64,000 nt of DNA from Macrostomum hystrix (GCA_950097015.1 CATNEN010000034.1:2108001-2172000); one strand, 5' to 3'. Shown: positions 10,495 through 59,136, numbered from the stretch's first letter. Numbers and translations are program-made. Notes: a model not told the origin generated them from the letters alone.

Positions 10495-11845
10495 TCGTCA
10501 TATCCGTAGGGGATAGATTGACAATCCATTCTATTCCTTCATATCCGTAGGGGATAGATTAGCAATCCATTCTATTCCTTCATATCCGTAGGGGATAGAT
10601 TAGCAATCCATTCTATACCTTCATATCCGTAGGGGATAGATTAGGAATCCATTCTATACCTTCATATCCGTAGGGGATAGATTAGCAATCCATTCTATTC
10701 CTTCATATCCTTAGGGGATAGATTGGCAATCCATTCTATTCCTTCATATCCGTAGGGGATAGATTGGCAATCCATTCTATTCCTTCATATCCGTAGGGGA
10801 TAGATTAGCAATCCATTCTATACCTTCATATCCGTAGGGGATAGATTGGCAATCCATTCTATTCCTTCATATCCTTAGGGGATAGATTGGCAATCCATTC
10901 TATTCCTTCATATCCGTAGGGGATAGATTGGCAATCCATTCTATTCCTTCATATCCGTAGGGGATAGATTGGCAATCCATTCTATTCCTTCATATCCGTA
11001 GGGGATAGATTGGCAATCCATTCTATACCTTCATATTCTTAGGGGATAGATTGGCAATCCATTCTATTCCTTCATATCCGTAGGGGATAGATTAGCAATC
11101 CATTCTATACCTTCATATCGTTAGGGGATAGATTGGCAATCCATTCTATACCTTCATATCCGTAGGGGATAGATTAGCAATCCATTCTATTCCTTCATAT
11201 CCGTAGGGGATAGATTAGCAATCCATTCTATACCTTCATATCCTTAGGGGATAGATTGCCAATCCATTCTATACCTTCATATCCGTAGGGGTTAGATTAG
11301 CAATCCATTCTATTTCTTCATATCCGTAGGGGATAGATTAGCAATCCATTCTATACCTTCATATCCGTAGGGGATAGATTAGCAATCCATTCTATACCTT
11401 CATATCCGTAGGGGATAGATTAGCAATCCATTCTATACCTTCATATCCGTAGGGGATAGATTAGCAATCCATTCTATTCCTTCATATCCGTAGGGGATAG
11501 ATTAGCAATCCATTCTATTCCTTCATATCCGTAGGGGATAGATTAGCAATCCATTCTATTCCTTCATATCCTTAGGGGATAGATTAGCAATCCATTCTAT
11601 ACCTTCATATCCGTAGGGGATAGATTAGCAATCCATTCTATACCTTCATATCCGTAGGGGATAGATTAGCAATCCATTCTATACCTTCATATCCGTAGGG
11701 GATAGATTAGCGATCCATTCTATACCTTCATATCCGTAGGGGATAGATTAGCAATCCATTCTATACCTTCATATCGGTAGGGGATAGATTAGCAATCCAT
11801 TCTTTACCTTCATATCGGTAGGGGATAGATTGGCAATCCATCATA
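10495..11845. repeat. 41-bp minisatellite (CCTTCATATCCGTAGGGGATAGATTAGCAATCCATTCTATA)
   Basis: GCAATCC recurs at 11341 and 11382; about 33 units. Confidence 0.95.
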
Positions 11846-11929
11846 TTCCATCAAAAGTTCCTTCAATTCCTTCAATTCGAACCATCCAAAGGATAATAAT
11901 TAGTGTCGAATTCTAGAATACTCGAGAAA

Positions 11930-12080
11930 TCAAAACAGGGTCAAATCTGAGAATCACGAGGATTCGTACCCTGGTCAAATCCAAGAATCATGAGAATTCT
12001 AGCCCTGGTCGAATCCGAGAATTATGAGGATTCGAACCAGTGTCAAATCCGAGAATCTTGAGGATTCGAACCAATGTCAA
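11930..12080. repeat. Degenerate copies of the 35-bp B-box-containing repeat
   Basis: GAGGATTCGAACCAGTGTCAAATCCGAGAA units resemble the array at 16405-16850. Confidence 0.75.
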
Positions 12081-12499
12081 CTTTTGGACTGTCAATTATT
12101 CGAGTCAGTGACATCTGACTTGTGCCTTTTCAGTCCTTTATTCAGATGAAAAATCATCAAATAGCATTTCCCAATCATTGGCACGAATCAAATCGATCAC
12201 TCAAAAAACCAGAAGCCACTTGCCTAGATTATGCTCCCATCGCGTTTATCGCCATATCAAAACTAAGCAGTTTCTCTCAATTGTCTCTATTAAAAATACT
12301 ATTTTTCAGCATAAAACGAACCGGCGCGTGACAGCTCACAATGGCTGATATCTGCCGAGATTAACTCGTGTATCATTCTCGTATTTATTAATCTAGATTT
12401 GATTCTAATCTAGTCATTCACTGATTAGGTTAACTGGTTCACTTTATTTGATTAAATGAAAAAGTGAGGAGACACAGAAGAAAAAGAGGGAAGAGAAAG

Positions 12500-14607: not shown

Positions 14608-15404
14608 AGTTTGATCACTGACCACCTGTCTCGTCTTTCACAACATTATCTTATAATCTACGAGTATATTCATAGCATAACCGATTGCAACTTGCTTCTC
14701 CATAAGGATAACTATTGTATCATATAATATTTCTCGCTTTTTTCTCCAAGGCTGCGGGCTTGCAGAAGGCGCGAAGCGGCTCTGTGAATCCAATTAATTA
14801 CAGCAATTTACCCTGCTAACGGTAGCTGCAGCAGCCGATTTGCAATCTCTTAAAGCTTTGCTCACCCTCGGGTACTGGCGACCATCTAGCTGTGCTCAAC
14901 TCACTGTGCTCAACTAACTTAGCTGAGCGGCAGGGCAAATCAAGGAGCATTAGCATACTTCTTATCTTGAGCTGCCTTGCCTTGGGGGTTAGGGAGAGAA
15001 GATTCGGGAGATTGGCTGAGCACAGCTGCCGCAGTAGAGCTCAGGTGATGAGGGTAAATAAAACACCGGCCATCAAGCGTCGGCAGTGCATTGCTTTGCC
15101 CTGATGTGCACACAGTCTACTCAGCTGCAAATCAGTACCGACATTTCGTCGGATAATAATAATTCCGGCTGGCCTGGAATAAAGCAGTTCTGCGCGGCAA
15201 TTCAGTGGGGTTCGGATGCTGCCGATATGTTCGGAAAAAAATAAATTCCATTACTGAGACGCGGCTGTCATATATATTTATTTATATTTGTAATTTGTAT
15301 TATAATATAATAATTTTGCCTAATAATAATTTTAATCATTTAATTGTTGTTCTTCTCAATTTTCTACAAAAGCAGCTAATATAAAAATTCAACTAGGGAA
15401 CATT

Positions 15405-15785
15405 GTCAACTGGGGATCCTCATCAATGGGGGGTCATCATCAAATGAGGGATCATGGTCAACTGGGGAATAATTGTCAACTGAGTGATCATCATCAACTG
15501 GGGGATCATTGTCAACTGGGGGATCATTGTCAACTGGGGGATCATTGTCAACTGGGGGATCATTGTCAACTGGGGGATCATTGTCAACTGGGGGATCATT
15601 GTCAACTGGGGGATCATTGTCAACTGGGTGATCATCATTAACTGGGGGATCATTGTCAACTGGGGGATCATTGTCAACTGGGTGATCATCATCAACTGGG
15701 GGATCATGGTCAACTGGGGAATAATTGTCAACTGAGGGATTCATTGTCAACTGGGTGATCATCATCAACTGGGGGATCATTGTTG
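15405..15785. repeat. 18-bp minisatellite (TCAACTGGGGGATCATTG)
   Basis: Direct tandem units, seen as 6-aa periodic ORFs in the track. Confidence 0.93.
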
Positions 15786-15861
15786 ATCCATGTTGCTCCA
15801 TATGGTAGACTTTCACAAAAATCGGTCATTCGATTTCGGATTTATTGTGAATTATTGCGGC

Positions 15862-15925
15862 AGTGGGTATTTGAAACAGCCCCGAGGTCTTCCCCAGGGG
15901 GATATAGCGTGGTCCTACTACTGTT
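15862..15925 (+). mobile_element. Possible degenerate non-LTR reverse-transcriptase fragment
   Basis: Translates SGYLKQPRGLPQG, followed after a frameshift by a GP-LL-like stretch, resembling the LINE RT motif GVPQGSVLGPLLF. Very short, so it may be chance. Confidence 0.25.
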
Positions 15926-16404
15926 AAGGAAGTCGCTATGCTAGAGCGGAGGACACAAACAGGATGCGATGCCGGCCTCCATAAATCTGAAATATATCTG
16001 CCTAGTGCTGATACTCGGATAAAATACGACCCTAAGAAGCGTTGTGAAGTGAATTAGCGTACTTCAATTTGATTGCCGACTGAGACTTGAATGAAAGTAG
16101 CAAGACTCTACGAGTAGACAATAAACAACTCGCAAATCAACAGTTTAACATCTATATATTTATTGAAGTGAGTCTTTTATGCTAATTGCCAAATTTTTAC
16201 TTCTAAATATAAGTATCTATAAGCATCAGAATAGTTATATTGTTGCACAGTTGAATGACATCTCAAACAAGTTAGTTGACGGTGTTACAGTTTGGAATGA
16301 AGCAGATTTCACTAATAGAGAAGACCTTGTCGAAACTAAACAATTACCCAATATATTAGTTGGTTATTCCAATAAAATGGCGTTGCAACAACAAAATATT
16401 TAAA

Positions 16405-16850
16405 CCTGAGAATTCGAACCAGTGTCGGATCCTAGAACACCCGTGGATTCGAGCCAGGGTCAAATCTTAGAACACCCGAGGATTCGAACCAGGGTCAAAT
16501 CTTAGAACACCCGAGGATTCGAACCAGGGTCAAATCCTAGAACACCCGTGGATTCGAACCAGGGTCAAATCCTAGAACACCCGTGGATTCGAACCAGGGT
16601 CAAATCTTAGAACACCCGAGGATTCGAACCAGGGTCAAATCTTAGAACACCCGAGGATTCGAACCAGGGTCAAATCCTAGAATACCCGTGGATTAGAACC
16701 AGGGTCAAATCCTAGAATACCCGAGGATTCGAGCCTCGGGATTCGATACCCGAGGTCAAATCCTAGAATACCCGAGGATTCGAACCATGGTCAAATCCTA
16801 GAACACCCGTGGATTAGAACCAGGGTCAAATCCTAGAATCCCAGGGATTA
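16405..16850. repeat. 35-bp tandem repeat containing a Pol III B-box (GGTTCGAATCC on minus strand)
   Basis: GGATTC recurs at 16445, 16480, 16515 and onward; about 12 units. Confidence 0.9.
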
Positions 16851-17034
16851 GTATAGTAATCAAAAGAGGAGGATATTTTAGAAACTCATTAATAATCCAC
16901 TGGATTATGTGGGTTGAGAATCAGAAAACATAAGCTTGCATAGCTTGGAAACGGATGGCGAGGAAGGCAATGTCACACAAAGAATTCAGATTAACAATGG
17001 TCGATGCAATCACTTGGTCAGGGATATACAAGTG

Positions 17035-17490
17035 TCAGTGCCTGCTTGCCAGCTTGAGTGGGTGCTCCCCAGCTGTTGCCACCGGCCTGTAAGCGATCTG
17101 AGGCGAACCGCCGCCCACGCCGCCCACGACGCCAATGCCGCCGCTGACGCCGACGCCGCTGCTGGCGGCTTCGCCAAGACCGTCGCCGCCGCGGAAGCAC
17201 TGGACAATCCGCCTTCGGCGATGGAAGCAGAATAGCAGCAGTAGGAGAGCCACTGACAGTGGCACAATGACAAAATAGTAGCTGTGGATCGGCTTCGGGT
17301 CCGCGCGATGCACTTCGCCGCCCGAGTGTGGCGGCTGAGGCTGCGGCGGCTGCGGCCGTTGTTCTGGCACAGCGGAGCTGATGTTGACTGTGGCCGCAGC
17401 TGCTGCTTGAGTCGCAGTCACTCCGGCTGCAGCCAAGGACCACAGGCGGTGCCAGCCACCCAAAGTCATCAGGACCAGACGCTCTCGCAA
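17035..17490 (-). CDS. Putative small single-pass membrane protein (orphan)
   Basis: The exon starts after a TTTAG acceptor at 17490, with an in-frame ATG at 17469. It encodes an Ala-rich N-terminus, an NIS sequon, a Pro/Gln stalk, hydrophobic YYFVIVPLSVALLLLLFCF followed by HRRRR, and a Gly-rich tail. No family recognised. Confidence 0.45.
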   Translation of the reverse strand: MRERLVLMTLGGWHRLWSLAAAGVTATQAAAAATVNISSAVPEQRPQPPQPQPPHSGGEVHRADPKPIHSYYFVIVPLSVALLLLLFCFHRRRRIVQCFRGGDGLGEAASSGVGVSGGIGVVGGVGGGSPQIAYRPVATAGEHPLKLASRH

Positions 17491-18589
17491 CTAAACTTAA
17501 TTAACGAGGTTAGAATTGGCCTCTTCAAACCCTACGGCTCAGATTGACGGATTCAGGTGGCGGTCTCTGAGCCTTTAGTTGACAATCAACAATGGGACAA
17601 TAGCAATGGGCGCAGAGCTCCGATTGGCCTTCCGACCGACCGGCTGAGGACAATGCCCTGGAGACACACGGGAGGAAATAAAAAATATGCGGACCTAAGC
17701 GAAGATCGACAGCGAGAGAGCTGGGGAAAATGGGACATGAAACTCAAGGGGAGCTGTATTTGGGGTAGGGGCCGCCCCTGAATATCCGCAGCTTTGGGAA
17801 GGAGGAAGGCAGTCAAAGCTTATTGCTGCTGCTCAGCAGTGTTCGCCACCTCCCTCCTCCTTTCTGTCTTCCCTACTTGTGTGTGCCCCGCAAACACTAC
17901 TTGGAATCCTTAATCCCTCTTCCTTCTCTCTTCCCCTATCCCGCAGCCATCCAGCTTCTCCCAAGCAATCTCTACGCTTGCTGACTGCCCCCCCCCCCGG
18001 CTACGGGGATCTACGGGAGTAGGCCGGTAGTCCAATCGAATCCTACGGAGGCTGAGAAAGACGAAAGACTAAGTCGTGAAAACGAGAGGAAATGAAAAAA
18101 GGCGATATAGGGGATCGCCGTCGGCTTCTCTGTCACGGCAGCGCGTGGGCACGCGGCGAGGTGGAGAAAAAGCCAGAAGGTCGGGGACTTGGTTCCGCCT
18201 GTTACACACGCACAGATCGAGAGTCTAAATATTGATGCGCGGCTTGGAGGTGGGGGCGAGGCCGCCCCAGCAGCAGCAGCCGCAATGTCAATGAGGATTT
18301 TTCCTTTAGAAACAGGGCCACAATGGGCGAGGCAAGCGCTGACAGCTAGGAGTGCACAGATAGGCCAAGCAGTAGCTGCGCCAATTATAACCCGGTAGGA
18401 CTCGATTTTCGAACAAGCTCAACAGATGCTGCAGTGAAATACATCAACGAGCAGTGATCTCGAATCCGTTACTCCTGGTTGCCATTATCTTGAAGCCTCT
18501 TGTCCGTAATTCTATGACTGTGCTCGTGATTCATCAGCCTCAAACAATTTACCCATTAGAATGAGTCACTCTACAGTCACCCCTAAGAA

Positions 18590-43037: not shown

Positions 43038-43318
43038 TTAAGTTCTAGAATGAGCATGTGGCGTTTTAAATTTCGGCTGCATTACTTCAACGACTACGCG
43101 CCTCTTGCAGCCGCCTTGACGCCTGCAGTCCAGCCAGTGTCGCAGGCGAAACACAGCGCAGAAGTAGCGGTGCGTCTTGAAAGCAGTCAAGAGTCGCAGC
43201 AGACGAAACGCGACTTCAAAGTCGCTGTTGCATTGCTGAAACGTTTCCGTAACGAACGCGATTAGAAAGTTCAGTAAGTTAAGGCCGACAAAGAAGAAAA
43301 AGAGTGCGTGAATGACGA
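43038..43318 (-). pseudogene. TRPV-like channel, 3' fragment (S6 helix and C-terminus) cut off by transposon insertion
   Basis: Encodes LVIHALFFFFVGLNLLNFLIAFVTETF (TRP S6 LLNxLIA motif). It joins in frame to the 57569+ fragment once the element and one TSD copy are removed. Confidence 0.88.
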
Positions 43319-43326
43319 GGACCATC

Positions 43327-46300
43327 ACTGACGTAAACCTAGCCTCATGCCATCCTCACGATATTTGAAAACAACGTGCGATGGCTGCGATACTGCCTAA
43401 AATTAGCAGATACGATGAAGACAGATATGCAATGCCTGTTTTTGCATCGATATATGCCATGGTCGTGCGTGTGAATGGCTCTAAAATATGAAAGCATGAG
43501 GATGGCGTGAGGATGGCGTGAGGATGGCTTCCCAAAGATGCACATATCAACTAATTCGTGCGATGATTTCTAAATCCTACATAGGCACGTGCCAGTAATA
43601 ACTGTGTGAAATTTCAAATCAAGGCATCAAATTCTTTGCCTTTTAGGCACGTCGGAGAAACTAAATCGGCTGAAGTATGTGGTGTCTTGCTGCGATAAAA
43701 GAACGTATTATAGGGTACATTGCGAAAGCACACATATCGCATAGCTACTCTCCTAAACTACAAAAATTCGAAAACCGCAACTTTGCGATGGCCCTAGTTG
43801 CTGAGATCGACGTCATTATACATGAACATAAAATGTCACAAATTTCTCCCCGGCGTTATCAAAATTATTCCAAGCAAACTAACAAAACATTTGCCGCTGG
43901 AGACAACAATGTCGACAAAAACTAAAGTCTAACTTAGAGTTAAAACCAAAATTAACATTAAAGATATTCGATTATATCCGAGAAGACTGCACTCAGTCTG
44001 TTGTTAGTTATTGCATCAGTTACTTCTCCCACTTTGAATGTAAGCAAGACTTGTGCAAGGACCACTCTTCTTCTAGTGGTCCTTGTACTTATGACCTAGT
44101 GTACTGAATAGTGTACTTGGACACTCATAAAGAACAAAGATTAGGCCTATACAAGCAATGTAAACAAGTCATTGACTCATTGGTTGGCAACACTGTGCAT
44201 TTTTTACCTCATTCTCAGTGCAGTAGTGTCAATTATTGGTGTGTATCAGTGCAAGCTCATTTATTGCTTACCTACATTACAATCCTACATAATTAATTAT
44301 ATTGAGCATCTACTTGCCATTCATTTCAATTGGTTCTTTCCATTGGCATTATTATACATTATAATTGAGTTCCTCATTTTTGTACATTTATATACATGGA
44401 ATCAAACAAATGGTTGACAAGTCCCATGAAATTTATAATGCCATGCAGTCGCAGATAAAGAAGAAAAAAGTATTTTACGTTTCTTGGAACATCAAATAAG
44501 GCTGATAAGATGAGATAGATGATAAGATAATATAGACTAATATTAATAATATTAATTTTCTATCTTGTCTTTAATCAACTCATTAAACTCTAACTAACTT
44601 ACTTAATATGAAATTCTTGACATCGTTCCTTCATGTTCCATACATTCTTATCTTTATTTTTGTGCTGAAAATAGGTCAGTTGTTACTATTTGTCTTTGTC
44701 TAGACTAAACATTTATTTTGCATTAACAACATGAAGTTCTTGTTCTTTTGTGTTCTATATATTCTTGTCTATATATTTGTGTTGAAAGTAGAGCACCAAT
44801 TGTTATCTGTCTAGACTAAACATCCATGGTCCATAAAGAACATGAAATTCTTGTTCCTTCATGTTCCGTCTATTCTTGTCTATATATTTGCGTTGAAAGT
44901 AGAGCACCAATTGTTATCTGTCTAGACTAAACATCCATGGTCCATAAAGAACATGAAATTCTTGTTCCTTCATGTTCCGTCTATTCTTGTCTATATATTT
45001 GCGTTGAAAGTAGAGCACCAATTGTTATCTGTCTAGACTAAAAATCCATGGTCCATAAAGAACATGAAATTCTTGTTCCTTCATGTTCCGTCTATTCTTG
45101 TCTATATATTTGCGTTGAAAGTAGAGCACCAATTGTTATCTGTCTAGACTAAACATCCATGGTCCATAAAGAACATGAAATTCTTGTTCCTTCATGTTCC
45201 GTCTATTCTTGTCTATATATTTGTGTTGAAAGTAGAGCACCAATTGTTATCTGTCTAGACTAAAAATCCATGGTCCATAAAGAACATGAAATTCTTGTTC
45301 CTTCATGTTCCGTCTATTCTTGTCTATATATTTGCGTTGAAAGTAGAGCACCAATTGTTATCTGTCTAGACTAAACATCCATGGTCCATAAAGAACATGA
45401 AATTCTTGTTCCTTCATGTTCCGTCTATTCTTGTCTATATATTTGCGTTGAAAGTAGAGCACCAATTGTTATTTGTCTAGACTAAAAATCCATGGTCCAT
45501 AAAGAACATGAAATTCTTGTTCCTTCATGTTCCGTCTATTCTTGTCTATATATTTGCGTTGAAAGTAGAGCACCAATTGTTATCTGTCTAGACTAAACAT
45601 CCATGGTCCATAAAGAACATGAAATTCTTGTTCCTTCATGTTCCGTCTATTCTTGTCTATATATTTGCGTTGAAAGTAGAGCACCAATTGTTATCTGTCT
45701 AGACTAAAAATCCATGGTCCATAAAGAACATGAAATTCTTGTTCCTTCATGTTCCGTCTATTCTTGTCTATATATTTGCGTTGAAAGTAGAGCACCAATT
45801 GTTATCTGTCTAGACTAAACATCCATGGTCCATAAAGAACATGAAATTCTTGTTCCTTCATGTTCCGTCTATTCTTGTCTATATATTTGTGTTGAAAGTA
45901 GAGCACCAATTGTTATCTGTCTAGACTAAACATCCATGGTCCATAAAGAACATGAAATTCTTGTTCCTTCATGTTCCGTCTATTCTTGTCTATATATTTG
46001 CGTTGAAAGTAGAGCACCAATTGTTATCTGTCTAGACTAAACATCCATGGTCCATAAAGAACATGAAATTCTTGTTCCTTCATGTTCCGTCTATTCTTGT
46101 CTATATATTTGCGTTGAAAGTAGAGCACCAATTGTTATCTGTCTAGACTAAACATCCATGGTCCATAAAGAACATGAAATTCTTGTTCCTTCATGTTCCG
46201 CCTATTCTTGTCTATATATTTGTGTTGAAAGTAGAGCACCAATTGTTATCTGTCTAGACTAAACATCCATGGTCCATAAAGAACATGAAATTCTTGTTCC

Positions 46301-47045
46301 TTCATGTTCCGCCTATTCTTGTCTATATATTTGTGTTGAAAGTAGAGCACCAATTGTTATCTGTCTAGACTAAACATCCATGGTCCATAAAGAACATGAA
46401 ATTCTTGTTCCTTCATGTTCCGTCTATTCTTGTCTATATATTTGCGTTGAAAGTAGAGCACCAATTGTTATCTGTCTAGACTAAACATCCATGGTCCATA
46501 AAGAACATGAAATTCTTGTTCCTTCATGTTCCGTCTATTCTTGTCTATATATTTGCGTTGAAAGTAGAGCACCAATTGTTATCTGTCTAGACTAAACATC
46601 CATGGTCCATAAAGAACATGAAATTCTTGTTCCTTCATGTTCCGTCTATTCTTGTCTATATATTTGCGTTGAAAGTAGAGCACCAATTGTTATCTGTCTA
46701 GACTAAACATCCATGGTCCATAAAGAACATGAAATTCTTGTTCCTTCATGTTCCGTCTATTCTTGTCTATATATTTGCGTTGAAAGTAGAGCACCAATTG
46801 TTATCTGTCTAGACTAAAAATCCATGGTCCATAAAGAACATGAAATTCTTGTTCCTTCATGTTCCGTCTATTCTTGTCTATATATTTGCGTTGAAAGTAG
46901 AGCACCAATTGTTATCTGTCTAGACTAAACATCCATGGTCCATAAAGAACATGAAATTCTTGTTCCTTCATGTTCCGTCTATTCTTGTCTATATATTTGC
47001 GTTGAAAGTAGAGCACCAATTGTTATCTGTCTAGACTAAACATAT
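43327..47045 (+). repeat. Left terminal inverted repeat (~1.4 kb unique plus ~20 x 111-bp array)
   Basis: Starts ACTGACGTAAACCTAGCCTCATGCCATC. The motif CATCCATGG recurs every 111 bp from 44821 to 46930. Confidence 0.95.
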
Positions 47046-47052
47046 ATTTTCT

Positions 47053-48465
47053 ATGAAGAACATGAACTATATGCTAAGTTTTCAATTTTTCCAGGCCTTC
47101 ATCAAGGACCCATATTACAAATTTGAGCCCAACGGGCCATTGCCGGATTTCATCCCTAAAGATATTGTTGTCGGCATTGAACTGTCTGCTGCCTGTGTCC
47201 GTGGTGCTGCTAGTATCCTTGGCATAAAATTTGCTAATAGCAAAATTCGAACTGTGAAAGGTACTTCATTTCAATACCTGACTGAAGATGGTAATGCACT
47301 TGCATACAGTAATGGTATAGCTATCTTTCGCACTCGAAGTATGGAAGCTGATTGCCGTCAGGATTTTTCAAAGCGGTGCAAGGCTGCAGAAGCGGGTAAG
47401 GTGTGGCTCGAAAGCAATGGATGGAAGGTTGTGGACAAGGAAATGTGTCGCCCGTCTGTTGCGGAGCACATATCAGAGGCGTTGAGGCATCTCGAATTGG
47501 CCGCATCGTTTTCGCCAGTGGAATTAATTTCTGTATTGAAAATTTCTATCGCCTGCATTCGGCAGTTGCAAGCCGAAGTTCGTGTAGCTGCAGCAGTTGG
47601 GAGTGTGGACATGCCAGCGACAGCGGGAGAACGAAAGGCGGCGGCAGCGAGGGAGCGAGAGGCGGCGAAAGAGCGAGAGCAGGTGGCGGCGAGGGAGCGA
47701 GAGGCGGCGAAAGAGCGAGAGCAGGCGGCGGCGGCTAGGGAGCGAGAGGCGGCGAAAGAGCGAGAGCAGGCGGCGGCGGCGAGAGAGCGAGAGTCGGCGA
47801 AAGAGCGAGAGCAGGTGGCGGCGAGGGAGCGAGAGGCGGCGAAAGAGCGAGAGCAGGCGGCGGCGGCGAGGGAGCGAGAGGCGGCGAAAGAGCGAGAGCA
47901 GGTGGCGGCGAGGGAGCGAGAGGCGGCGAAAGAGCGAGAGCAGGCGGCGGCGGCTAGGGAGCGAGAGGCGGCGGAAGAGCGAGAGCAGGCGGCGGCGGCG
48001 AGAGAGCGAGAGTCGGCGAAAGAGCGAGAGCAGGTGGCGGCGAGGGAGCGAGAGGCGGCGAAAGAGCGAGAGCAGGCGGCGGCGGCGAGGGAGCGAGAGG
48101 CGGCGAAAGAGCGAGAGCAGGCGGCGGCGGCGAGGGAGCGGCGAGAGGCGGCGGCGGCGAGGGAGCGAGAGGCGGTGGAAGAGCGAGAGCAGGCGGCGGC
48201 GACGAGGGAGCGGCGAGAGGCGGCGGCGGCGAGGGAGCGAGAGGCGGTGGAAGAGCGAGAGCAGGCGGCGGCGACGAGGGAGCGGCGAGAGGCGGCGGCG
48301 GCGAGGGAGCGAGAGGCGGTGGAAGAGCGAGAGCAGGCGGCGGCGGCAAAGGAGAGAGATGGAGATGAAAAGAAGAAGCGACGAAAGAGGAAGGCTGATC
48401 TGAGTGATATTACTGGTGGGACAGGTCGTAAGACTTATTTTACCAGAAGAATGGTCCAGATGTAA
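47053..48465 (+). CDS. Transposon accessory gene: unknown N-terminal domain, long E/R/A-rich helical repeat, basic NLS
   Basis: 470-codon open frame; a probable splice acceptor (TTTTTCCAG) at 47094 means the true start may be upstream. Non-repetitive ~190 aa, then AAAREREAAKEREQ repeats (about 47640-48360), then KKKRRKRK. Convergent with the transposase. Confidence 0.7.
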   Translation: MKNMNYMLSFQFFQAFIKDPYYKFEPNGPLPDFIPKDIVVGIELSAACVRGAASILGIKFANSKIRTVKGTSFQYLTEDGNALAYSNGIAIFRTRSMEADCRQDFSKRCKAAEAGKVWLESNGWKVVDKEMCRPSVAEHISEALRHLELAASFSPVELISVLKISIACIRQLQAEVRVAAAVGSVDMPATAGERKAAAAREREAAKEREQVAAREREAAKEREQAAAAREREAAKEREQAAAARERESAKEREQVAAREREAAKEREQAAAAREREAAKEREQVAAREREAAKEREQAAAAREREAAEEREQAAAARERESAKEREQVAAREREAAKEREQAAAAREREAAKEREQAAAARERREAAAAREREAVEEREQAAATRERREAAAAREREAVEEREQAAATRERREAAAAREREAVEEREQAAAAKERDGDEKKKRRKRKADLSDITGGTGRKTYFTRRMVQM

Positions 48466-48569
48466 ATTAATGCTCTTGGGTGTGCTATTATTTTCTCCTT
48501 TACCGCTTTTTGGTATTCGGCGGAACAGTTTTGAGCAGCAATCGCTATGCGAAGAACTACTTGAGCACG

Positions 48570-48635
48570 TCGCCAATAAGGATGATTATTGCTTTGCAGA
48601 CAAGACTGCTAAGCAATAATCATCCTTATTGGCGA
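48570..48635. other. Perfect 25-bp inverted repeat (66-nt hairpin)
   Basis: TCGCCAATAAGGATGATTATTGCTT (48570-48594) is the exact reverse complement of 48611-48635. An inner GCAG/CTGC pair extends the stem around a 6-nt loop. Confidence 0.9.
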
Positions 48636-50223
48636 ATAAGCGAGCGAGTAAGTTTTACATCTGGTGCCCGAGAGAGTAAATGGAATGTTTTTTGTGTGTG
48701 CTGTCGACAAATTTGCTGGTTGACATTGTCGTTTTCTAATGTTAAGATGTTTGCTGTCTGTAGTAATGTCGAAGGACCACAGCTAATACGAGAATCTATA
48801 ACTGCAATTGACGTCACCTCTTAGTACGCTTGCAATTCTGTCTTCTATGGAAATGCATTTTAATTTTTTCTATCGTAATCTGTTACTTATGCTGCATGGC
48901 AAGAAGAATACAACTTTTTTCATCGCATGGCATAAAAAGTCTGCTGTTATAACGCGTATTCTGCAAGTTGGTCTTGCAACTTTTCAGTTCGGCAAAAGCC
49001 TTTAAAGGGAAATATGAATTTTAATTTTTTTCTTATTTTGAACCAGCTTTAACTGGACAAAATGCAGCTCGTCGCACAAAATAGAAAACTTTAACCCTCC
49101 GAAACTGTACATGTAGCACACAAAAATTAAAACGAAACTCGTTCATGAGTAAACTGAAAGCGAGAATAAGAAGTATATTATTTTGAGTATACTAAAAGGG
49201 CAAAATGAAAACAACGAATTGCGCGACCAAAAAGTACATAAACGCTCAATTCTGCTGTCTGCTGGGCTGGGCGCCATTGCCCACATAAAAGTATAGAAGC
49301 GTAGAAGACATACATTGCCATTTCGACAACGACATAAACACTGCAAATGCGTTAGTATGAGGAGCAGCACAAATGAGCATATCAGGGTGCGAATGTGCTA
49401 CAAATGTAGAAATGCAACGTTAGCTAGAGTCATAAGAATTGGATAGCTGGGTTAACATAAGCAGACCACATCAAAAGAGAACAAGTTGAAGGACTATTTA
49501 CGGTGTTTTTACGGTATAGGACGGTACTATATTAGGAATTGGAGAACGCCGGCTAGGTTAGAAACGAGTACACTAAGATCTTAAAAGCGTCGCATCTGCA
49601 AGAAGGGAGTAGATGCAGGGTAGGGAAGAAGAGGTGATCCGTAATTTCTCCATTGTTAATTTCTACACTATTTGAGAGGGATTGGATATTTACAACAAAT
49701 TTCTTTATCATCCATATCATCCATCATCAATTGGCTCTGTGACGAAAAACAACATGGACAAAATATTCTCATTATCATGTTCAAAAAGCGGGCAACACTT
49801 CCTCAGTGCGTTTTTGCCATGTGACACCCATGCGGAAAAAACACTATCAGCAGTATATATCCTGATGCATGAATCAAACATAAAAACAATGACTTTAAAA
49901 TGCCCAAATACTCGAGTGCAAGGTCAAGAACAAGCCCATAGTATTATTATTGCTATTGGCAACTGACTACAATTGGCAAAAATTTGAAAGAGACCTAAAA
50001 ATCTGCAGATCGTCGAGATCTGAAAATTGGCGACAAACAAAATAATATCTGCAATCATTTGCCAACTCTTCTCGTCGTGCATTTGTGCGCTCTGTCGCTC
50101 TACACATCACCCCACACAAAAATGGTTGGTACTATATACTCGTAACATGAAATATTCTGTTGCCCTAAACTTCTGCAAACTACAAGCAGAAAATTTAACA
50201 CCATGTCCTTGAGGCATAGACCA

Positions 50224-53200
50224 TCAGCAACGGCACGTTCCGACGATGTAGACTAAAAGAGTCGGTCTGCCACGGTTCCGCTGCCGACCCTCCTTATAAA
50301 ATGGCAGTTTGCCTTGAGCACTAGATGCTGCGTCATCGTAGATGTAATGGGTGTTTCCACGAACGATGCGGCCGTAGAAATGACCGGGCACAGCAATTGT
50401 TGTGCAACAGAGATTGTAACTAAAATTAGTGAATAAAATTCCATACATTCGAAGCTTGCACCCAAGATACTAGTCATTAACTAGTTAAACCGTTAACTTT
50501 CTGTTAACGAAGTCAAGTTTTTTATTAACGATGCCCAACACATGCTGAAATTAGCTAGCCTGAATATGTAAGAATCACAAACGGCGCATTGAACCAGTCA
50601 ATCGGTAGCATACATTGTAGTCCCATCATGAAGAAACTACGCGGATGACATCGGAGTCCTTCCACAGCTGCCTGTGAACTTCCCCATCGAAGTCTTTCTA
50701 AAGCCCTCTCAGTCCATGCTTTAATCTCCAAATATTATCAAGCACCGGAAGTTGATATTCAAGAGAAATGTCAAAGGCAGCGTGCACTTACTGAATGGAT
50801 CCGTCCTCCGGGAAAGGATGCATGACTGAGTGAGGTGGGAGAGTCTCCCGACCCGTTGCCGAATCTGGAATGCCCACAACCACAACTGGCGGTGGAAAGT
50901 TGGCAAAGCGGGGATGGTGTAAGTAGCGCGAGTCGAGGTTACAGTCGAGGCATTCCACACAGCGGTCGCCAGAAGTAAATACTTCCCGAAGATAGGCCTC
51001 GGGAGACATTAAGATCCGGCGGCTGTCACCAGAGGGCGCTTGCTCCGGAGTTGGAAGCACAAGTTGGTAGAAGCGCCGTGTCTCCTCTTTGCGGCAGAAG
51101 GGGCAACCCACACGCTGAGTTATAGCATGAAACTCTCCGAGCACCCAGGTAGTAACATCCAGCGCTCCCTGGAATAGGCTTATATCGATTTCCTTGGAAG
51201 TGCTGGACCGGCGCCTCACGACAGCGCCACGCCGGTGCAATTCAGGACAACGCAGGAGCAGCCGAGCCCGAGCGAAATGGATACTCTCATGAGTAAAAGC
51301 CTGGACAGCTGCATGCAGAAAGTCAGTCAGGGGAGCGCAATCATCGGGAAGTCGCTGGACTGCCTGCCGAAACTCGGAATGGTCTCGCATTGCAAACGTC
51401 AAAGCTGTCAGCAAATGGTCAACTGTACAAGCATTCGAGACATGAACTGTTAAAACATCGTTGCCGTAAGGCACGTTACGAGAAGTCGAGTAGTTCCTCA
51501 GCATTGCAAACTGCACTTCTCTGGATGACTGGGCAAAGATAGCGGTTCGCTTCGGCGAAGTGTAGGTGGCTGATGGACGCTTGCGCTTCTTGTTTACGAT
51601 ACCAGCAAAATGTGTTCCTTCCTCTGTCAGATTCTCCTCGAACTCCATCGCTGTGAACGGATTCTCGGCTGAACGTTGGCTTGGACGAACGGAATTTCCA
51701 ACAGGCACAGAGGGTCCAGAGGCAGATGCGGAGCCTGGCACAGAGGGTCCAGAGGCAGATGAGGCAGATGCGGAGCCTGGCACAGAGGCAGATGAGGCAG
51801 ATGCGGAGCCTGGCACAGAGAGTCCAGAGGCAGATGCGGAGCCTGGCACAGAGGGTCCAGAGTCAGATGCGGAGCCTGGCACAGAGGGTCCAGAGGCAGA
51901 TGAGGCAGATGCGGAGCCTAACACAGAGGGTCCAGAGGCAGATGAGGCAGATGCGGAGCCTGGCACAGAGGCAGATGAGGCAGATGCGGAGCCTGGCACA
52001 GAGGGTCCAGAGGCAGATGCGGAGCCTGGCACAGAGGGTCCAGAGGCAGATGCGGAGCCTGGCACAGAGGGTCCAGAGTCAGATGCGGAGCCTGGCACAG
52101 AGGGTCCAGAGGCAGATGCGGAGCCTGGCACAGAGGGTCCAGAAGCAGATGAGGCAGATACGGAGCCGGGCACAGAATTTTCGTTAGTAAGAACAGACGC
52201 CCCTGGGGTAGTACGTGGCATTGTATCATTCTGCATAAAATGAGTTGGATGCTCGTTGGAGGAATTTGCTTCACTATCCGAGCAATCGGAGGTGCCGCTG
52301 CGAACGCCTTCCTGTTGCAAAAAGACTCCCAATGGTCGCAGGAACTGGTGGTACACTCCTGGCAGCTTTCTGTGCATTGTCCTAACAAAAGTCATGGCAC
52401 TTGGCCGCTGGTCATCAAGGAGGCTGCCCTTAATGAGGCGAATGCAGAGTTCAGTACTGCCCTCCTGGAAGCTGTGCAACGACTCAGGGGTTGCAGCATA
52501 CATTTCTTCCCGGGCGTAACGCCAAGGCTCAGACATTATGCTCGTAAAGAGCGGCAGGTACGGCAACATGACGTCAAGGAGCTTGCGTGCCAACGGAGTA
52601 CAGCGGAATGGATTCGGAACAGCGCGGAAATCTTCCTCGTCCAGGTTGGCTGAAAATCGATTCTCCAGTTGTTGGTGAACATTTTGAAAGATCTGCCAAA
52701 ATGGAGATGCCCTCTTGATTGTATTGTCGGGTCTAGCGTAGAGCAGTTCCTCCGCAGGAATAAATTCCTCCACATCATCCAGTTCGTCGGCAATGGCGGC
52801 GTCCAGCAGCTGCTTTGCAGCCACATTCTGGCCACCCAATGTGAGCTCCTCCATTGGAAGTTCTAGAACCTCCAGAGTTGGTGCAAGGAGCAGACCAAAG
52901 AATGCTGTAACTACCATTTTAGCTCTGGCGAGGCACGTTGTGCGTACAAGCGCACCAAAGACGTGCTTCCAATAGCACGAGGCTCTTTGTCCTGCCATGA
53001 GGTCACTATTGTCCAGCTCGTAAACTCGTGCACAATATGGCTCCTGCCAAGTCCCACGAGGCAGAATCCCCGAAGCTCACGCTGTGAGAAGGACCGACGG
53101 AGCACGGCGCAGCAGAGTCGTAAATATGGAAGAATGTCCATTCCATGGTGGGCATAGGTAAGTGCAGCCAGGCTGGGGATGTTGAAGTCAGTGACAGCTT

Positions 53201-54580
53201 GAAGCATTGTTAGGCTAGCAACGGATTTCCGTGCTGCTGTGATGAATGTGTCCAATGCAAACTTTATAGTGGACTTAGTCTGCGAGTTGGACAGAAGCAG
53301 CATAATTGGCACTGGAGCTTCCCCTTCAATTGGATGATGCAGAGCCAGGGCATGCAAGTAAGCACCGTGTCCATCGGCCAGGGGCGCACCAGTTGAGTCC
53401 AGACCGACACGAATCGGTAAATTGCGACAGTGAAGCACTTTTAGAAGCCGAATTGCTTTGTCCATATAGAGCAGGGCAAAGCGCGGGTGGCCAACACCTG
53501 GTCGTACGTTCACATCTCTGATGAACGGGGGATCGAGCATTTCCCCGTTCATTAGGATATCCATGATTTGATCCTGGGAAAACCTTTCTTTCAACCGCTC
53601 CTGAGATGCCGCAGTTCGCAGCACGCTAGAGGTCGGTACTTCCGGTGTAATGCCATCCGTAGCCAGCTCTGCAGACACAGAGTATGCGTTAGAGGAGTTG
53701 ACTCGCTGGGCCAACTCTTCTCGGCGATGACCTCTCAGTGGGCGTGGCTTCACAGTGTGCGGTTTAAGGGGGCCGCTCGCCCTCAGAGTCCACAGCAACC
53801 TACTATCCTGTGATGTTAGCCTGAAGCGAGCGTTGCAGGAGGTGACCCGGCAGTAGACATCTGCCGTCACCTCTGCCGAGGTAGCTGCCACCCTGCTTCG
53901 CTGCACGCATAAGCAACAGGAGAGCATAGTCGAGAAGTGCGGAAAGATGAAGTCCTGCCAGTTCTTTTGCAGACGTCCGCTGCTATCTAGGATGATCGCC
54001 GTGTGCAGTCTCGCATGAAAAATCGGCTGCTCACTGCAAAGAAATGACTCTTATTTGTATACATGCGATGAAGTTAGGGTCATGATGTTTCAAAAGAGCC
54101 CTGACTAAAGACCATTGTAAACAGGATTCATGCATGACACTGCAAAAGTTGATCTAAAAATCCAGCAAAATACTTACTCCTCATTGGCGCTTTCTTTGTC
54201 TAGGACTTCATCGTGGACAGGATCGTCTGATATATCTGTTAAAATCTTTACTGCGTTCCTGCGAAACTGGTCATACAGCCAGCGTCGGTGAATGAATGAG
54301 TCCTCAAAGCCCAACAGAATGCATGCCCTGGACCACACTGTCCCTACAGGTGTGGGTCCTGGCAGAGGCTTGGTAGCAACATCTGAGTAACTCAGACGAC
54401 GAGAGGCAAACAGGTTCTGAATGTCATCGACGGAGACGGTATTCCAATCTGAAATTAACATGGCAAGTCACTTAAATAGTCTGTACCATGAAAAAAAGGA
54501 GTCATATGCAACGTCTGCATGAGTGTTGCACAAAGTCTGAAGCAATCAGAAAAGACAACAGGGCAAAAAAACTTACTCAT
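50224..54580 (-). CDS. NOF/MULE-like DDE transposase fused to a C-terminal USP-like cysteine-protease domain (~1237 aa; one frameshift)
   Basis: Predicted exons 54580-54577 (ATGA|GTAAGT), 54448-54178, 54033-50792 and 50419-50224, with GT-AG junctions. Phases match if one base is added near 52987. Motifs: N-terminal VW...LY..FRRN helix region; CxxxxC..H zinc-finger-like segment; D1 VGLDSTG, D2 AVTDFN, RSH, LPYLPLFTSIM, E in GSTELCIRLIK; then SNAC, CPFC/CLDC, GHF and YDD. Confidence 0.8.
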
Positions 54581-54689
54581 TAGAAAGTCTGCTAATAATT
54601 GCCAGTCAAGCCCACAAAATCTGAAATGAAAGTGACACGTCTCATGTGCATAGCTTGAACATATAGATACATAGATGTACCACTATAAT

Positions 54690-57568
54690 AATGACTGAAC
54701 ATGAAGGAACAAGAATTTCGTGTTCTTTATGGACCATGGATTTTTAGTCTAGACAGATAACAATTGGTGCTCTACTTTCAACGCAAATATATAGACAAGA
54801 ATAGACGGAACATGAAGGAACAAGAATTTCATGTTCTTTATGGACCATGGATGTTTAGTCTAGACAGATAACAATTGGTGCTCTACTTTCAACGCAAATA
54901 TATAGACAAGAATAGACGGAACATGAAGGAACAAGAATTTCATGTTCTTTATGGACCATGGATGTTTAGTCTAGACAGATAACAATTGGTGCTCTACTTT
55001 CAACGCAAATATATAGACAAGAATAGACGGAACATGAAGGAACAAGAATTTCATGTTCTTTATGGACCATGGATGTTTAGTCTAGACAGATAACAATTGG
55101 TGCTCTACTTTCAACGCAAATATATAGACAAGAATAGACGGAACATGAAGGAACAAGAATTTCATGTTCTTTATGGACCATGGATGTTTAGTCTAGACAG
55201 ATAACAATTGGTGCTCTACTTTCAACGCAAATATATAGACAAGAATAGACGGAACATGAAGGAACAAGAATTTCATGTTCTTTATGGACCATGGATGTTT
55301 AGTCTAGACAGATAACAATTGGTGCTCTACTTTCAACGCAAATATATAGACAAGAATAGACGGAACATGAAGGAACAAGAATTTCATGTTCTTTATGGAC
55401 CATGGATGTTTAGTCTAGACAGATAACAATTGGTGCTCTACTTTCAACGCAAATATATAGACAAGAATAGACGGAACATGAAGGAACAAGAATTTCATGT
55501 TCTTTATGGACCATGGATTTTTAGTCTAGACAGATAACAATTGGTGCTCTACTTTCAACACAAATATATAGACAAGAATAGGCGGAACATGAAGGAACAA
55601 GAATTTCATGTTCTTTATGGACCATGGATGTTTAGTCTAGACAGATAACAATTGGTGCTCTACTTTCAACACAAATATATAGACAAGAATAGGCGGAACA
55701 TGAAGGAACAAGAATTTCATGTTCTTTATGGACCATGGATGTTTAGTCTAGACAGATAACAATTGGTGCTCTACTTTCAACGCAAATATATAGACAAGAA
55801 TAGACGGAACATGAAGGAACAAGAATTTCATGTTCTTTATGGACCATGGATTTTTAGTCTAGACAGATAACAATTGGTGCTCTACTTTCAACGCAAATAT
55901 ATAGACAAGAATAGACGGAACATGAAGGAACAAGAATTTCATGTTCTTTATGGACCATGGATGTTTAGTCTAGACAGATAACAATTGGTGCTCTACTTTC
56001 AACGCAAATATATAGACAAGAATAGACGGAACATGAAGGAACAAGAATTTCATGTTCTTTATGGACCATGGATGTTTAGTCTAGACAGATAACAATTGGT
56101 GCTCTACTTTCAACACAAATATATAGACAAGAATATATAGAACACAAAAGAACAAGAACTTCATGTTGTTAATGCAAAATAAATGTTTAGTCTAGACAAA
56201 GACAAATAGTAACAACTGACCTATTTTCAGCACAAAAATAAAGATAAGAATGTATGGAACATGAAGGAACGATGTCAAGAATTTCATATTAAGTAAGTTA
56301 GTTAGAGTTTAATGAGTTGATTAAAGACAAGATAGAAAATTAATATTATTAATATTAGTCTATATTATCTTATCATCTATCTCATCTTATCAGCCTTATT
56401 TGATGTTCCAAGAAACGTAAAATACTTTTTTCTTCTTTATCTGCGACTGCATGGCATTATAAATTTCATGGGACTTGTCAACCATTTGTTTGATTCCATG
56501 TATATAAATGTACAAAAATGAGGAACTCAATTATAATGTATAATAATGCCAATGGAAAGAACCAATTGAAATGAATGGCAAGTAGATGCTCAATATAATT
56601 AATTATGTAGGATTGTAATGTAGGTAAGCAATAAATGAGCTTGCACTGATACACACCAATAATTGACACTACTGCACTGAGAATGAGGTAAAAAATGCAC
56701 AGTGTTGCCAACCAATGAGTCAATGACTTGTTTACATTGCTTGTATAGGCCTAATCTTTGTTCTTTATGAGTGTCCAAGTACACTATTCAGTACACTAGG
56801 TCATAAGTACAAGGACCACTAGAAGAAGAGTGGTCCTTGCACAAGTCTTGCTTACATTCAAAGTGGGAGAAGTAACTGATGCAATAACTAACAACAGACT
56901 GAGTGCAGTCTTCTCGGATATAATCGAATATCTTTAATGTTAATTTTGGTTTTAACTCTAAGTTAGACTTTAGTTTTTGTCGACATTGTTGTCTCCAGCG
57001 GCAAATGTTTTGTTAGTTTGCTTGGAATAATTTTGATAACGCCGGGGAGAAATTTGTGACATTTTATGTTCATGTATAATGACGTCGATCTCAGCAACTA
57101 GGGCCATCGCAAAGTTGCGGTTTTCGAATTTTTGTAGTTTAGGAGAGTAGCTATGCGATATGTGTGCTTTCGCAATGTACCCTATAATACGTTCTTTTAT
57201 CGCAGCAAGACACCACATACTTCAGCCGATTTAGTTTCTCCGACGTGCCTAAAAGGCAAAGAATTTGATGCCTTGATTTGAAATTTCACACAGTTATTAC
57301 TGGCACGTGCCTATGTAGGATTTAGAAATCATCGCACGAATTAGTTGATATGTGCATCTTTGGGAAGCCATCCTCACGCCATCCTCACGCCATCCTCATG
57401 CTTTCATATTTTAGAGCCATTCACACGCACGACCATGGCATATATCGATGCAAAAACAGGCATTGCATATCTGTCTTCATCGTATCTGCTAATTTTAGGC
57501 AGTATCGCAGCCATCGCACGTTGTTTTCAAATATCGTGAGGATGGCATGAGGCTAGGTTTACGTCAGT
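54690..57568 (-). repeat. Right terminal inverted repeat (~13 x 111-bp array plus ~1.4 kb unique)
   Basis: CATGAAGGAACAAGAATTTC recurs every 111 bp from 54700 to 56032. Ends ...GGCTAGGTTTACGTCAGT. Confidence 0.95.
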
Positions 57569-59136
57569 GGACCATCGGGCTGTCAAGGCTGTATGTGATC
57601 ATGTTCATTATCGTTTTTATGCATGAGTAGAGAGACAGAATTCCTATCTCAAAGTCTGGCGAATCGACCAGGATATAGAAGTCCAGACTAAAAAGTACAA
57701 TCCAATAAAACAACAGGGGTAGTGCTGCCATGAAACTGGACAGCATCGAGTGAAAGATAAAGAACAGCTTGCCAGTTGGCCTGGACACAATCTCCAAGTA
57801 CTGCGCAAAGTGAAGCAAAGTGAAAGAAATAAACAATGTGTTTGATCCGATGAACATTTCCTGGGTTGTTACGCCAACATTATCGTTTCGGAGTGGGGGC
57901 AGAAGGGTGTAAAAGTCAGGTTTTTGTAGAAAACTTGACGATGTACAGAAAATGGCTCCGCTCAGGAGGGCAACGCACAGGTAGGTGTCGAAAACTGAGC
58001 GACGCACGAAGCAGCTGTGGCGACGTGGATTCGGGAGCATCAACCGTCTCTGACCTCGCTCGTAGATGTAGAAAAACAACTTTATCGTGACGACGAAGGA
58101 TTGGAGTATCAAAATCGTCGCTATCATCGAAATGCTGCCATTTACCGATAAGAAAATCTCAGTGCATGACTTTCGCTTCACAACCTGCAGCTCGAAGAAT
58201 TGATAGTACAGGCTTGTGTTGTAAAGGGACGTCTTGTTGTAGCCTTCACGCGCAGCGGCGGCAATTGTGGCACGATTGCAATGAAGCAAATTGCCGATGG
58301 ACGAGACGAACATCATGACGGACTCAAGGACGCCAGTCAGCAGAAACATCACCGTAGGCACACTTAAAATCAGCACACGCAGAACTGTTAGCATTCGAGT
58401 TTGTTGGATGTACAGGCGAAACCATTGTTGAATTTAAAGGATCTTCGAGTAGTTTAGACTTCTTCAGAGCCTCCACCTGGCTAGACCCCACGTAGGTGAG
58501 CAGATGCAGAGGACTCATTTGGCATCGGCTGCCATGACACAGGTCATAGTCTGTCAGATCATAGAGCCTCACCGTCCAACCGCCAGATCGACTAACCGAG
58601 CTCAGTAGATAGCTGGGAAGGTGCAGCAGCTTGCGAGCCAGTCTGAACGCGCCAAACTTAACACAAGCCTCAAGTGGTCTGAGTCCGGTCGAGTCCTCTT
58701 GCAAAATTAGACTGCTCAAAATGTGAGGCGTTCTGGCTAGTGTCGCCAGGATTGCCGCCTCGAACGCTTTGGCTCGTTTATACCTCGGCGCAAACATCTG
58801 GCAGCGCGCCAGACTGTGCAGTACGGTGCTGCCGTCGGGTTCCAGTTGGGCCAGGTGGTCAGCACAGTCGGCCAGCAGCAGATCAAATACCCGCACAGAC
58901 TGGAGCAGAATTGCCAGGTGAATGGGGTAGGCGAATTGCAGACTCAGCAATCCATACTTTGTGGACTTCTGTCGACGGCATCGACCCGGGCACCGCATCG
59001 CTGCGGGTAAGCCGTCCACAGTGTCGCACAGCGGCTGAGCTAGTTTTCCTGCCAGGTCCGGCCCCATTGCCTGCACGAAGGCCACCGGGTCATCATCAGC
59101 GAGTGCCTGCAGGGCCTCTTCCGATGAATAATGCAT
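57569..59136 (-). pseudogene. Intronless TRPV-like cation channel, 5' part (ankyrin repeats, S1-S5, pore); disrupted
   Basis: ATG at 59136. Ankyrin-like YPIHLA, GSTVLHSLA and GLRPLEAC; TRPV linker LYDLTDYD (compare TRPV5/6 LYDLTEID); multiple hydrophobic helices. A 1-bp frameshift near 58434 links the two ORFs (PL|IQQWFRLY). Truncated by the transposon just before S6. Confidence 0.85.

Follow-up and report, generated by a model that had tools for sequence, protein, structure and literature searches.

Foldback (FB) elements of Drosophila have long modular arms built of tandem repeats and a 9-bp target-site duplication, and their gene NOF codes for a Mutator-related transposase. Autonomous Foldback copies are rare, which has made these elements hard to study; few FB copies in Drosophila carry NOF. 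In maize, MuDR has two convergent genes, mudrA and mudrB, which are driven from its terminal inverted repeats. Two further groups come close. Rehavkus elements encode a PHD finger, make a 9-bp duplication and contain minisatellites (PMC6446971), and their inverted termini are long, with tandem repeats of variable number beneath the tips; those of Tribolium are foldback elements whose ends are filled with satellite (bioRxiv 2024.12.02.626372). Muta1 of Aedes aegypti is an active type-2 foldback Mutator-like element (MULE) which makes 8- or 9-bp duplications (PMC5225508), its excision cutting the flanking DNA through a hairpin (PMC5499845, PMC5225508) and its transposase binding more strongly the more subterminal repeats there are (PMC5499845). 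Here we describe a 14,242-bp element at positions 43327-57568 of a 64,000-nt stretch of the Macrostomum hystrix genome (GCA_950097015.1 CATNEN010000034.1:2108001-2172000; the window, whose coordinates are used throughout). It is very probably a cut-and-paste transposon from the NOF/Foldback branch of Mutator, young and complete in structure, which has inserted in a host coding exon. The kind of element is already known; new relative to the described FB/NOF, Rehavkus and Muta elements are a conserved orphan second gene, a putative ubiquitin-specific protease (USP)-like module and evidence of expression that includes spliced-leader trans-splicing. In full-text searches of the literature, no paper came up that deals with Macrostomum elements of the Mutator or Foldback type, or with a USP domain fused to a MULE transposase.

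A repeat finder recovers one long inverted pair, 43326-46198 with 54697-57569, which is 100% complementary over 2,873 nt without a gap; all further inverted pairs come from a 111-bp tandem repeat matched to itself in other registers. A first-pass annotation of the window had described arms of ~3.7 and ~2.9 kb, the outer 1.4 kb of which mirror each other without indels, and had proposed aligning them. The arms measure 3.74 and 2.88 kb, and the ungapped mirrored part proves longer than claimed, with full identity along the whole inverted pair. On both sides, a unique outer part of 1.37 kb is followed by a 111-bp array (98% identity), of 21.4 copies at the left and 13.6 at the right, and the arms differ in length by repeat number only, the left array having ~8 more units at its inner end. 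Arms consisting largely of tandem repeats in unequal copy number are the Foldback/NOF architecture, as the annotation had recognized. The tips read ACTGACGTAAACC from 43327, with the mirror sequence ending at 57568, and between the arms lies a unique centre of 7.6 kb. The 8-bp direct repeat reported at the flanks is present as two exact copies of GGACCATC, and such a duplication, together with inverted ends of 2.9-3.7 kb, agrees with the Mutator/MULE hallmark of long terminal inverted repeats within an 8-10 bp duplication.

Deleting the element and one GGACCATC copy in silico fuses two minus-strand open reading frames (ORFs) into an uninterrupted host frame of 381 codons (43038-43326 and 57577-58394, minus), which encodes a multi-pass membrane protein. 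Because excision restores this frame, the insertion is genuine and not a palindromic assembly artefact. As the host gene is undecayed, the insertion is also recent; perfect arms, a perfect duplication and an undecayed host ORF together indicate a very recent event, in keeping with what had been proposed. The host ORF is otherwise intact, and the allele with the element is a fresh knockout.

To place the transposase, an exhaustive phmmer search was made with its residues 93-441. It returned 51 relatives, the best being P0001 from Macrostomum lignano (44% identity, E 7e-79). Alignment of the window protein with these relatives reveals an N-terminal zinc-finger-like region (W..C..C..C..H) and a series of conserved blocks: LxxDATG, in the window VGLD304STG; DFSW, in the window VTD374FN; (C/G)xxH, with GRSH424 in the window and CxxH elsewhere in the family; and, after a gap of ~200 residues, TNxxVENWFxxxK, with EGSTE620LCIRLIK in the window. 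The last block reads as the IS256/MULE style of catalytic glutamate. The arrangement is that of MULEs: an IS256-related RNase-H-fold DDE enzyme with (C/D)xxH between the second D and the E.

The AlphaFold2 model of P0001 residues 95-680, built with 36 aligned relatives, has a pLDDT of 89.7 and a pTM of 0.77. In a Foldseek search of Swiss-Prot models, its top match is the Drosophila NOF-FB 120.7-kDa protein (P16320; E 2.5e-25; TM 0.60 by query), query residues 3-586 being aligned with NOF residues 100-682. The E-values of the next matches are weaker by fourteen orders of magnitude; all of them are Mutator-derived or of the IS256 family (FAR1/FRS, K. lactis ALPHA3, ZSWIM9/3, ISRm3, IS406, IS1081 and IS256), after which comes RAG1. 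Among solved structures, the model matches RAG1, P element, Hermes, Transib and ISCth4 at about 1e-3, which are the expected hairpin-forming DDE enzymes. In an ESM Atlas shape search, the top cluster is named NOF-FB and has members with Peptidase_C48 (45%) and PHD (34%). The NOF type named in the first-pass annotation is thus supported, on structural evidence only, by the predicted fold of a relative that is 44% identical to the window protein.

An 8-bp duplication is also made by other superfamilies, and the element could in principle belong to hAT, P or Zisupton/KDZ, the latter also having a cysteine protease, which would suit the protease-like C-terminal domain described below. We regard this as highly improbable. 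The model does match Hermes and P transposase, but at ~3.5e-3 and ~9e-4, respectively, against 2.5e-25 for NOF, some 20 orders weaker; the 52 family members have no KDZ, hAT-dimerisation, BED or THAP match in Pfam; the glutamate motif TNxxVENWFxxxK is of the IS256/MULE type; and the duplication of the M. lignano paralogue is 9 bp, MULEs such as Muta1 making both 8 and 9 bp (PMC5225508). Zisupton/KDZ was rejected because there is no KDZ domain, the fold is that of NOF/MULE, and the C-terminal domain resembles USP rather than Ulp1.

A stronger rival places the element in Rehavkus, a MULE sister group with long, minisatellite-filled ends, rather than in NOF/Foldback; we consider this unlikely, though to be taken seriously. 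Long inverted ends in which the number of subterminal tandem repeats varies are reported for Rehavkus (bioRxiv 2024.12.02.626372), minisatellites are present here, and the distant relatives P0018, P0027 and P0046 carry PHD fingers. However, no PHD finger is matched by Pfam in the window protein or its nearest relatives, only in the sister clade, and the duplication is 8 bp in the window (9 bp in the paralogue). In a tree of 25 cores, the window protein and P0001 join at 100/100 within a PHD-less clade, which is split at 100/98 from the clade of PHD-bearing members; the latter may comprise Rehavkus/NOF-like elements. As the tree is without a Rehavkus reference and 34% of the NOF-FB cluster in the ESM Atlas carries PHD, NOF and Rehavkus may be one lineage. 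Placement in the NOF/Foldback branch remains our preferred reading.

Four public runs (X1-X4) contain the element interior, and their contigs were mapped over 48760-54750. Contigs from X3 and X4 leave the introns uncovered, with joints across three minus-strand GT..AG introns (54576-54449, 54177-54034 and 50791-50420), and are therefore RNA-derived. X1 has the same three joints plus a poly(A) tail, while X2 contains the unspliced form only and behaves as DNA. The predicted spliced, minus-strand transposase gene is thereby established. A single base lies between the ATG at 54580 and intron 1, and the frame runs through exons 2, 3 and 4 to a stop at 50224; unspliced transposase contigs extend to 54726, within the right arm. 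A loose end in X4 at 54621 reads, when reverse-complemented, as TGCGAAGACTCAATTTATTGCAT, part of the 35-nt M. lignano spliced leader, which ends in ATG (PMC8629364). Since this loose end carries the spliced leader, the transposase mRNA is trans-spliced at tttcag (54626-54621), and the transposon mRNA goes through host spliced-leader trans-splicing. By its sequence, this leader points to M. lignano or a near relative as host.

The transposase has ~1,237 residues when read with an X across a frame break at 52985/6 (minus), where an A-run is one base shorter in the window copy than in all four runs. Bridged in this way, the protein aligns unbroken to P0001 residues 5-661 (E 8e-115); the longer reading is therefore the conserved one, and the break is either a private one-base loss or a homopolymer assembly error. 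A short intron at the frame switch near 52990 was considered and dropped, as all four runs have one extra base there. A second mismatch between the assembly and all four runs is T>A at 50172.

Other copies are visible in the same data. A joint from 50352 to 53762 is present in all four runs, DNA and RNA alike; its depth in the DNA run is ~97, versus ~159 for the full-length interior. Its shorter side is just 26+4 letters, equal to the k-1 unitig overlap, which makes the joint good evidence, if not airtight, for an internally deleted derivative of the type that arises in active cut-and-paste families when gap repair is interrupted. Within intron 3 (50398-50747), X2 has several variants at about one-third depth, which indicates at least ~3 sequence versions of the element.

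These data also bear on whether the copy is an inactive relic or an assembly construct, its arms made perfect by polishing or collapse and its frame break the mark of a dead copy. The window does differ from all reads at 52985 and 50172, the arm repeat numbers are beyond checking with short contigs, and the arms of the M. lignano paralogue are 100% identical despite a nested retrotransposon, which could mean polishing or arm conversion. Against this, the duplication is exact and excision restores the 381-codon host ORF; the interior occurs in four independent public runs, with processed mRNA; a palindromic chimera would lack the 7.6-kb unique centre; and there are microhomology deletion derivatives, which are typical of active cut-and-paste families. 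A relic or construct is accordingly improbable, and we retain the young, complete transposon as the explanation.

P0001 is encoded in M. lignano (GCA_002269645.1, Mlig_3_7) on NIVC01000212.1, within a paralogous element of 13.6 kb at 4760-18403 of locus L001. This element has perfect arms of 1,895 nt, an 89-bp array (7.2 and 5.2 copies), termini ACTGACATGTCCGTAGCC, of which ACTGAC is shared with the window element, and a 9-bp duplication, CCTAGTCAG; downstream of the transposase gene lies a convergent second gene. The CACTG tip of the window element had suggested a CACTA transposon, a candidate ruled out because the paralogue starts GACTGAC, so that the first base belongs to the flank, and because the duplications are 8-9 bp, not 3 bp. 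A non-LTR retrotransposon is nested in the paralogue at L001 7215-9785, with an 856-aa ORF containing reverse transcriptase and an RNase H-like domain. It parts the left 89-bp array from its last unit (9899-9956), and the L001 arms are still 100% identical.

The second gene of the window element lies on the plus strand and converges on the transposase gene, each beginning within ~120 nt of an arm's inner edge. This layout, noted in the first-pass annotation together with the start beside an arm, recurs in M. lignano. Its product, which we call the accessory protein, begins with a conserved head of ~150 aa, goes on with a long charged repeat (EREAAKEREQ) and ends in the basic tail KKKRRKRK; the head is 45% identical to the M. 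lignano paralogue product over 157 aa (E 1e-38). Pfam gives no match for the accessory protein, and the ESM Atlas no look-alike (best score 0.44); a word-index search with the head likewise found no match, which is not evidence of absence. Of the likeness to MuDR that had been suggested, the convergent two-gene layout therefore holds, whereas the second protein is without a detectable relative outside these elements, and the Pfam and ESM Atlas searches reveal no homology to mudrB. The transposases of the two elements are only 36-44% identical, and both elements retain the second gene. As it has been kept through such substantial divergence, it belongs to the basic plan of the element and is no chance capture.

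How the accessory gene starts can be read from the same comparison. Similarity begins at FQAFI, with FQ encoded by ttccag, a putative splice acceptor, and conservation begins at ttccag|GCC (47094/47095), so that an exon would open with GCC at 47095. In L001, stop codons lie five codons upstream with no ATG between, and the public gene call starts at GCC. The terminal ATG of the M. lignano leader would be in frame with the accessory gene, and it is thus a reasonable inference that the gene may take its start codon from the spliced leader. The window, for its part, has an in-frame genomic ATG at 47053. The charged helix is coded by GC-rich tandem repeats, of 45 bp at 47636-48359 in the window, where local GC is raised to 0.66 with strong GC and AT skew, and of 18 bp at L001 15197-15736. 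The sequence of the charged repeat has turned over, while the head domain is conserved.

In both transposases, an in-frame tandem DNA repeat lies between the core and a protease-like C-terminal domain (window 51704-52176, L001 12085-12407), the two linker repeats being unrelated in sequence, with 33-bp versus 63-bp units. Public contigs break at the window repeat, and so repeat number probably varies among copies. Past the linker, the window protein reads ...HVSNAC961TVDHLL..., then has two CxxC pairs (CPFC...CVECLDC), and exon 4 contributes PGH1186FYGRIVRGNTHYIYD1201D...LLVYIV. A variant Cys box, NTCTxDN, and a His box, SGHY...W..YDG, are found at the C-termini of many family members. At the same position the distant relative P0046 has a Pfam UCH domain (9e-20), with a PHD finger upstream, and P0051 has an Ulp1/C48 domain in place of UCH.

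We find similar indications in predicted structure. The AlphaFold2 model of the window C-terminal piece without exon 4, built from a shallow alignment, is confident only at residues 52-185 of 293. Compared by VIA-align, this confident part gives 18 best rows that are all USP-type (Z 2.9-6.6, covering ~100 residues of the catalytic-Cys thumb), among them USP9X, USP25, USPL1, USP14, USP18, USP1, USP7 and the USP-like TssM. Foldseek matches the C-terminal piece to vertebrate DRIP1/C14orf28 (E 3e-3, probability 1.0) and, weakly, to NOF residues 716-878 (E 0.087, probability 0.95), and by ESM features DRIP1/C14orf28 ranks first (0.97), with UCH families next. A weak hhalign alignment with the P0046 UCH domain (P 0.0035) pairs the PPVVVV strand, GH(F/Y), DD and the closing LFY-like strand. 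Pfam UCH has no match in the window protein, and phmmer with the P0046 UCH domain finds none in the window C-terminus. To judge by these models and motifs, the C-terminal domain is probably a diverged USP-like module, probably shared with NOF. The DRIP1-like region of the window is 50794-51672 (minus), residues ~930-1065, and DRIP1 itself may have been domesticated from part of a NOF-like transposase.

Two motifs in the arms are candidates for protein binding. GTGAGGATGGC has 8 matches versus 1.1 expected, all within the arms, with a tandem trio ~170 nt inside the tip, and is a candidate terminal protein-binding site. Each 111-bp unit contains an inverted pair of GAACATGAA, with 71 matches versus 3.5 expected, and the 89-bp unit of the paralogue contains three copies of RAACATGAW (41 matches versus 1.1 expected). 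As this core was kept while the rest of the repeat diverged, GAACATGAA/RAACATGAW is the best candidate for a subterminal transposase-binding site.

Several points weigh against placing the element in the NOF/Foldback branch as a complete transposon with a USP-like module. Only 16% of the structurally aligned residues are identical to NOF, and the protein modelled is P0001, which has 44% identity to the window protein, rather than the window protein itself. The MULE domain of Pfam (PF10551) is not found in the window protein and stays below threshold in P0008 and P0019 (18-19 bits against a cut-off of 27.6; E 0.002-0.0035); the family is too diverged for the Pfam MULE model. Raw window ORFs have no Pfam match at all, and a PDB sequence search with the family profile gives a chance match only. 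Word-index protein searches with a 338-aa ORF, where a length filter hid full-length relatives, and with the start of a second piece of the transposase likewise gave no match, which is not evidence of absence. The duplication is 8 bp, against the 9 bp usual for Foldback and Rehavkus, and the window copy carries the frame break at 52985/6. For transcription of the accessory gene, the only evidence is indirect and consists of a single RNA contig running in from 48874. Finally, the USP assignment consists of motifs, a model confident at only 52-185 of 293 residues, middling Z scores and an hhalign P of 0.0035.

From these observations a mechanism can be proposed. The transposase would bind the arms at the GAACATGAA pairs and the termini at GTGAGGATGGC, pair the ends and cut with D304, D374 and E620; by analogy with Muta1, cutting would pass through a hairpin on the flanking DNA, and integration would follow with a stagger of 8-9 bp. 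Both genes would be transcribed inward, as in MuDR, from promoters located in or beside the inner repeats; the convergent layout and the transposase contigs reaching into the arm (54726) fit inward transcription from the arms. The accessory protein, with its head, charged helix and nuclear localisation signal, could act as a nuclear cofactor or regulator, and the USP-like domain might strip ubiquitin-like modifiers from the transposase, chromatin or repair factors. If the frame break is real, the window copy would need transposase from intact copies. A more far-reaching proposal is a distinct, currently active Macrostomum NOF-type lineage, which would be set apart from every Foldback element described so far by its need for a conserved, lineage-specific nuclear accessory protein (head, charged single helix, nuclear localisation signal), by a transposase fused to a working USP-type deubiquitinase and by reliance on the host spliced leader, and whose protease-like module may have been domesticated in vertebrates as DRIP1/C14orf28; this we hold only tentatively.

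Table 1. Features of the Macrostomum hystrix element, in window coordinates
Feature	Position	Strand	Remarks
Target-site duplication, left copy	43319-43326		GGACCATC; 8 bp
Left arm	43327-47066	+	3.74 kb; unique outer part 43327-44696, starting ACTGACGTAAACCTAGCC; then array 44697-47066
GTGAGGATGGC motifs (candidate sites)	43349-43528		One inverted, 23 nt from the tip; three in tandem at 43496-43528; mirrored at 57367-57546
Inverted GAACATGAA pair in each 111-bp unit (candidate sites)	44697-47066		RAACATGAW core also in the 89-bp units of the M. lignano paralogue
Accessory gene	47095-48465	+	ORF 47053-48465 when the in-frame genomic ATG at 47053 is counted
Poly(A) addition site, transposase mRNA	48864	-	X1 contig of 1,510 nt ends here in a loose run of T
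Exon 4	50224-50419	-	64 codons plus stop; His box GHF; ...YDD...LLVYI motif
Segment absent from deletion derivative	50353-53761		3,409 bp; 4-nt GTTT microhomology at junction
Intron 3	50420-50791	-	372 nt; GT..AG
Exon 3	50792-54033	-	3.2 kb; zinc-finger-like N-terminal region, DDE core, Ser/Ala/Gly/Pro linker, Cys box C961
Linker repeat	51704-52176	-	33-bp units coding SASGPSVPG; public contigs break here
Intron 2	54034-54177	-	144 nt
Exon 2	54178-54448	-	RNA-derived contigs
Intron 1	54449-54576	-	128 nt; splits the codon after ATG 54580-54578
Exon 1 (after spliced-leader acceptor)	54577-54620	-	Acceptor tttcag 54626-54621
Right arm	54693-57568	-	2.88 kb; 111-bp array 54693-56198, then unique outer part
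Target-site duplication, right copy	57569-57576		GGACCATC; 8 bp

Macrostomum is used for work on regeneration and the germline, and this copy is apparently complete and expressed save for one frame break. It offers a defined transposase with a partner gene, candidate binding motifs that two diverged families have in common, natural deletion derivatives and a recent insertion that disrupts a gene. An active endogenous element would affect how stable the genomes of Macrostomum lines are, and might be put to use as a genetic tool. The questions it opens are what role long, repeat-filled arms play, whether the second protein helps or restrains an animal Mutator-type transposase, and why many NOF-like transposases carry a ubiquitin-like protease.

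Among known systems, FB-NOF of D. melanogaster shares with the window element long inverted arms of tandem repeats in unequal copy number, the same transposase-core fold over ~580 residues and a weak match past the core, to NOF 716-878. The two differ in sequence (~16% identity), in host, which is here a flatworm, and in duplication length (8 bp versus 9 bp for FB); the window element has in addition a conserved convergent second gene, the 1.37-kb unique outer arm part, 111-bp units and a spliced-leader trans-spliced mRNA. Rehavkus, in Tribolium and annelids, is likewise MULE-related, with long inverted termini and variable subterminal repeats able to seed satellites, but makes a 9-bp duplication and has a single ORF and a PHD finger, whereas the window element has no PHD finger, an 8-bp duplication and two genes.

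MuDR belongs to the same superfamily and also has two convergent genes, each starting beside an inverted end; however, the second protein of the window element is unrelated to anything found in our searches, and MuDR ends are ~0.2 kb and without kilobase arrays, unlike those described here. With Muta1, the window element has in common the subterminal tandem repeats, a DDE plus (C/D)xxH centre, deletion derivatives and the 8/9-bp duplications, both lengths being seen in Macrostomum, 8 bp in the window element and 9 bp in the M. lignano paralogue. In contrast, Muta1 is 3.2 kb long, with 145-bp ends, 12-bp repeats and a single 504-aa protein, and has neither a protease-like domain nor a second gene. 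Closest of all is the M. lignano paralogue, with ACTGAC termini, perfect kilobase arms, RAACATGAW arrays, a homologous convergent accessory gene and a transposase 36-44% identical to that of the window, from which it differs in its 89-bp unit, 9-bp duplication, nested retrotransposon and other charged-repeat sequence.

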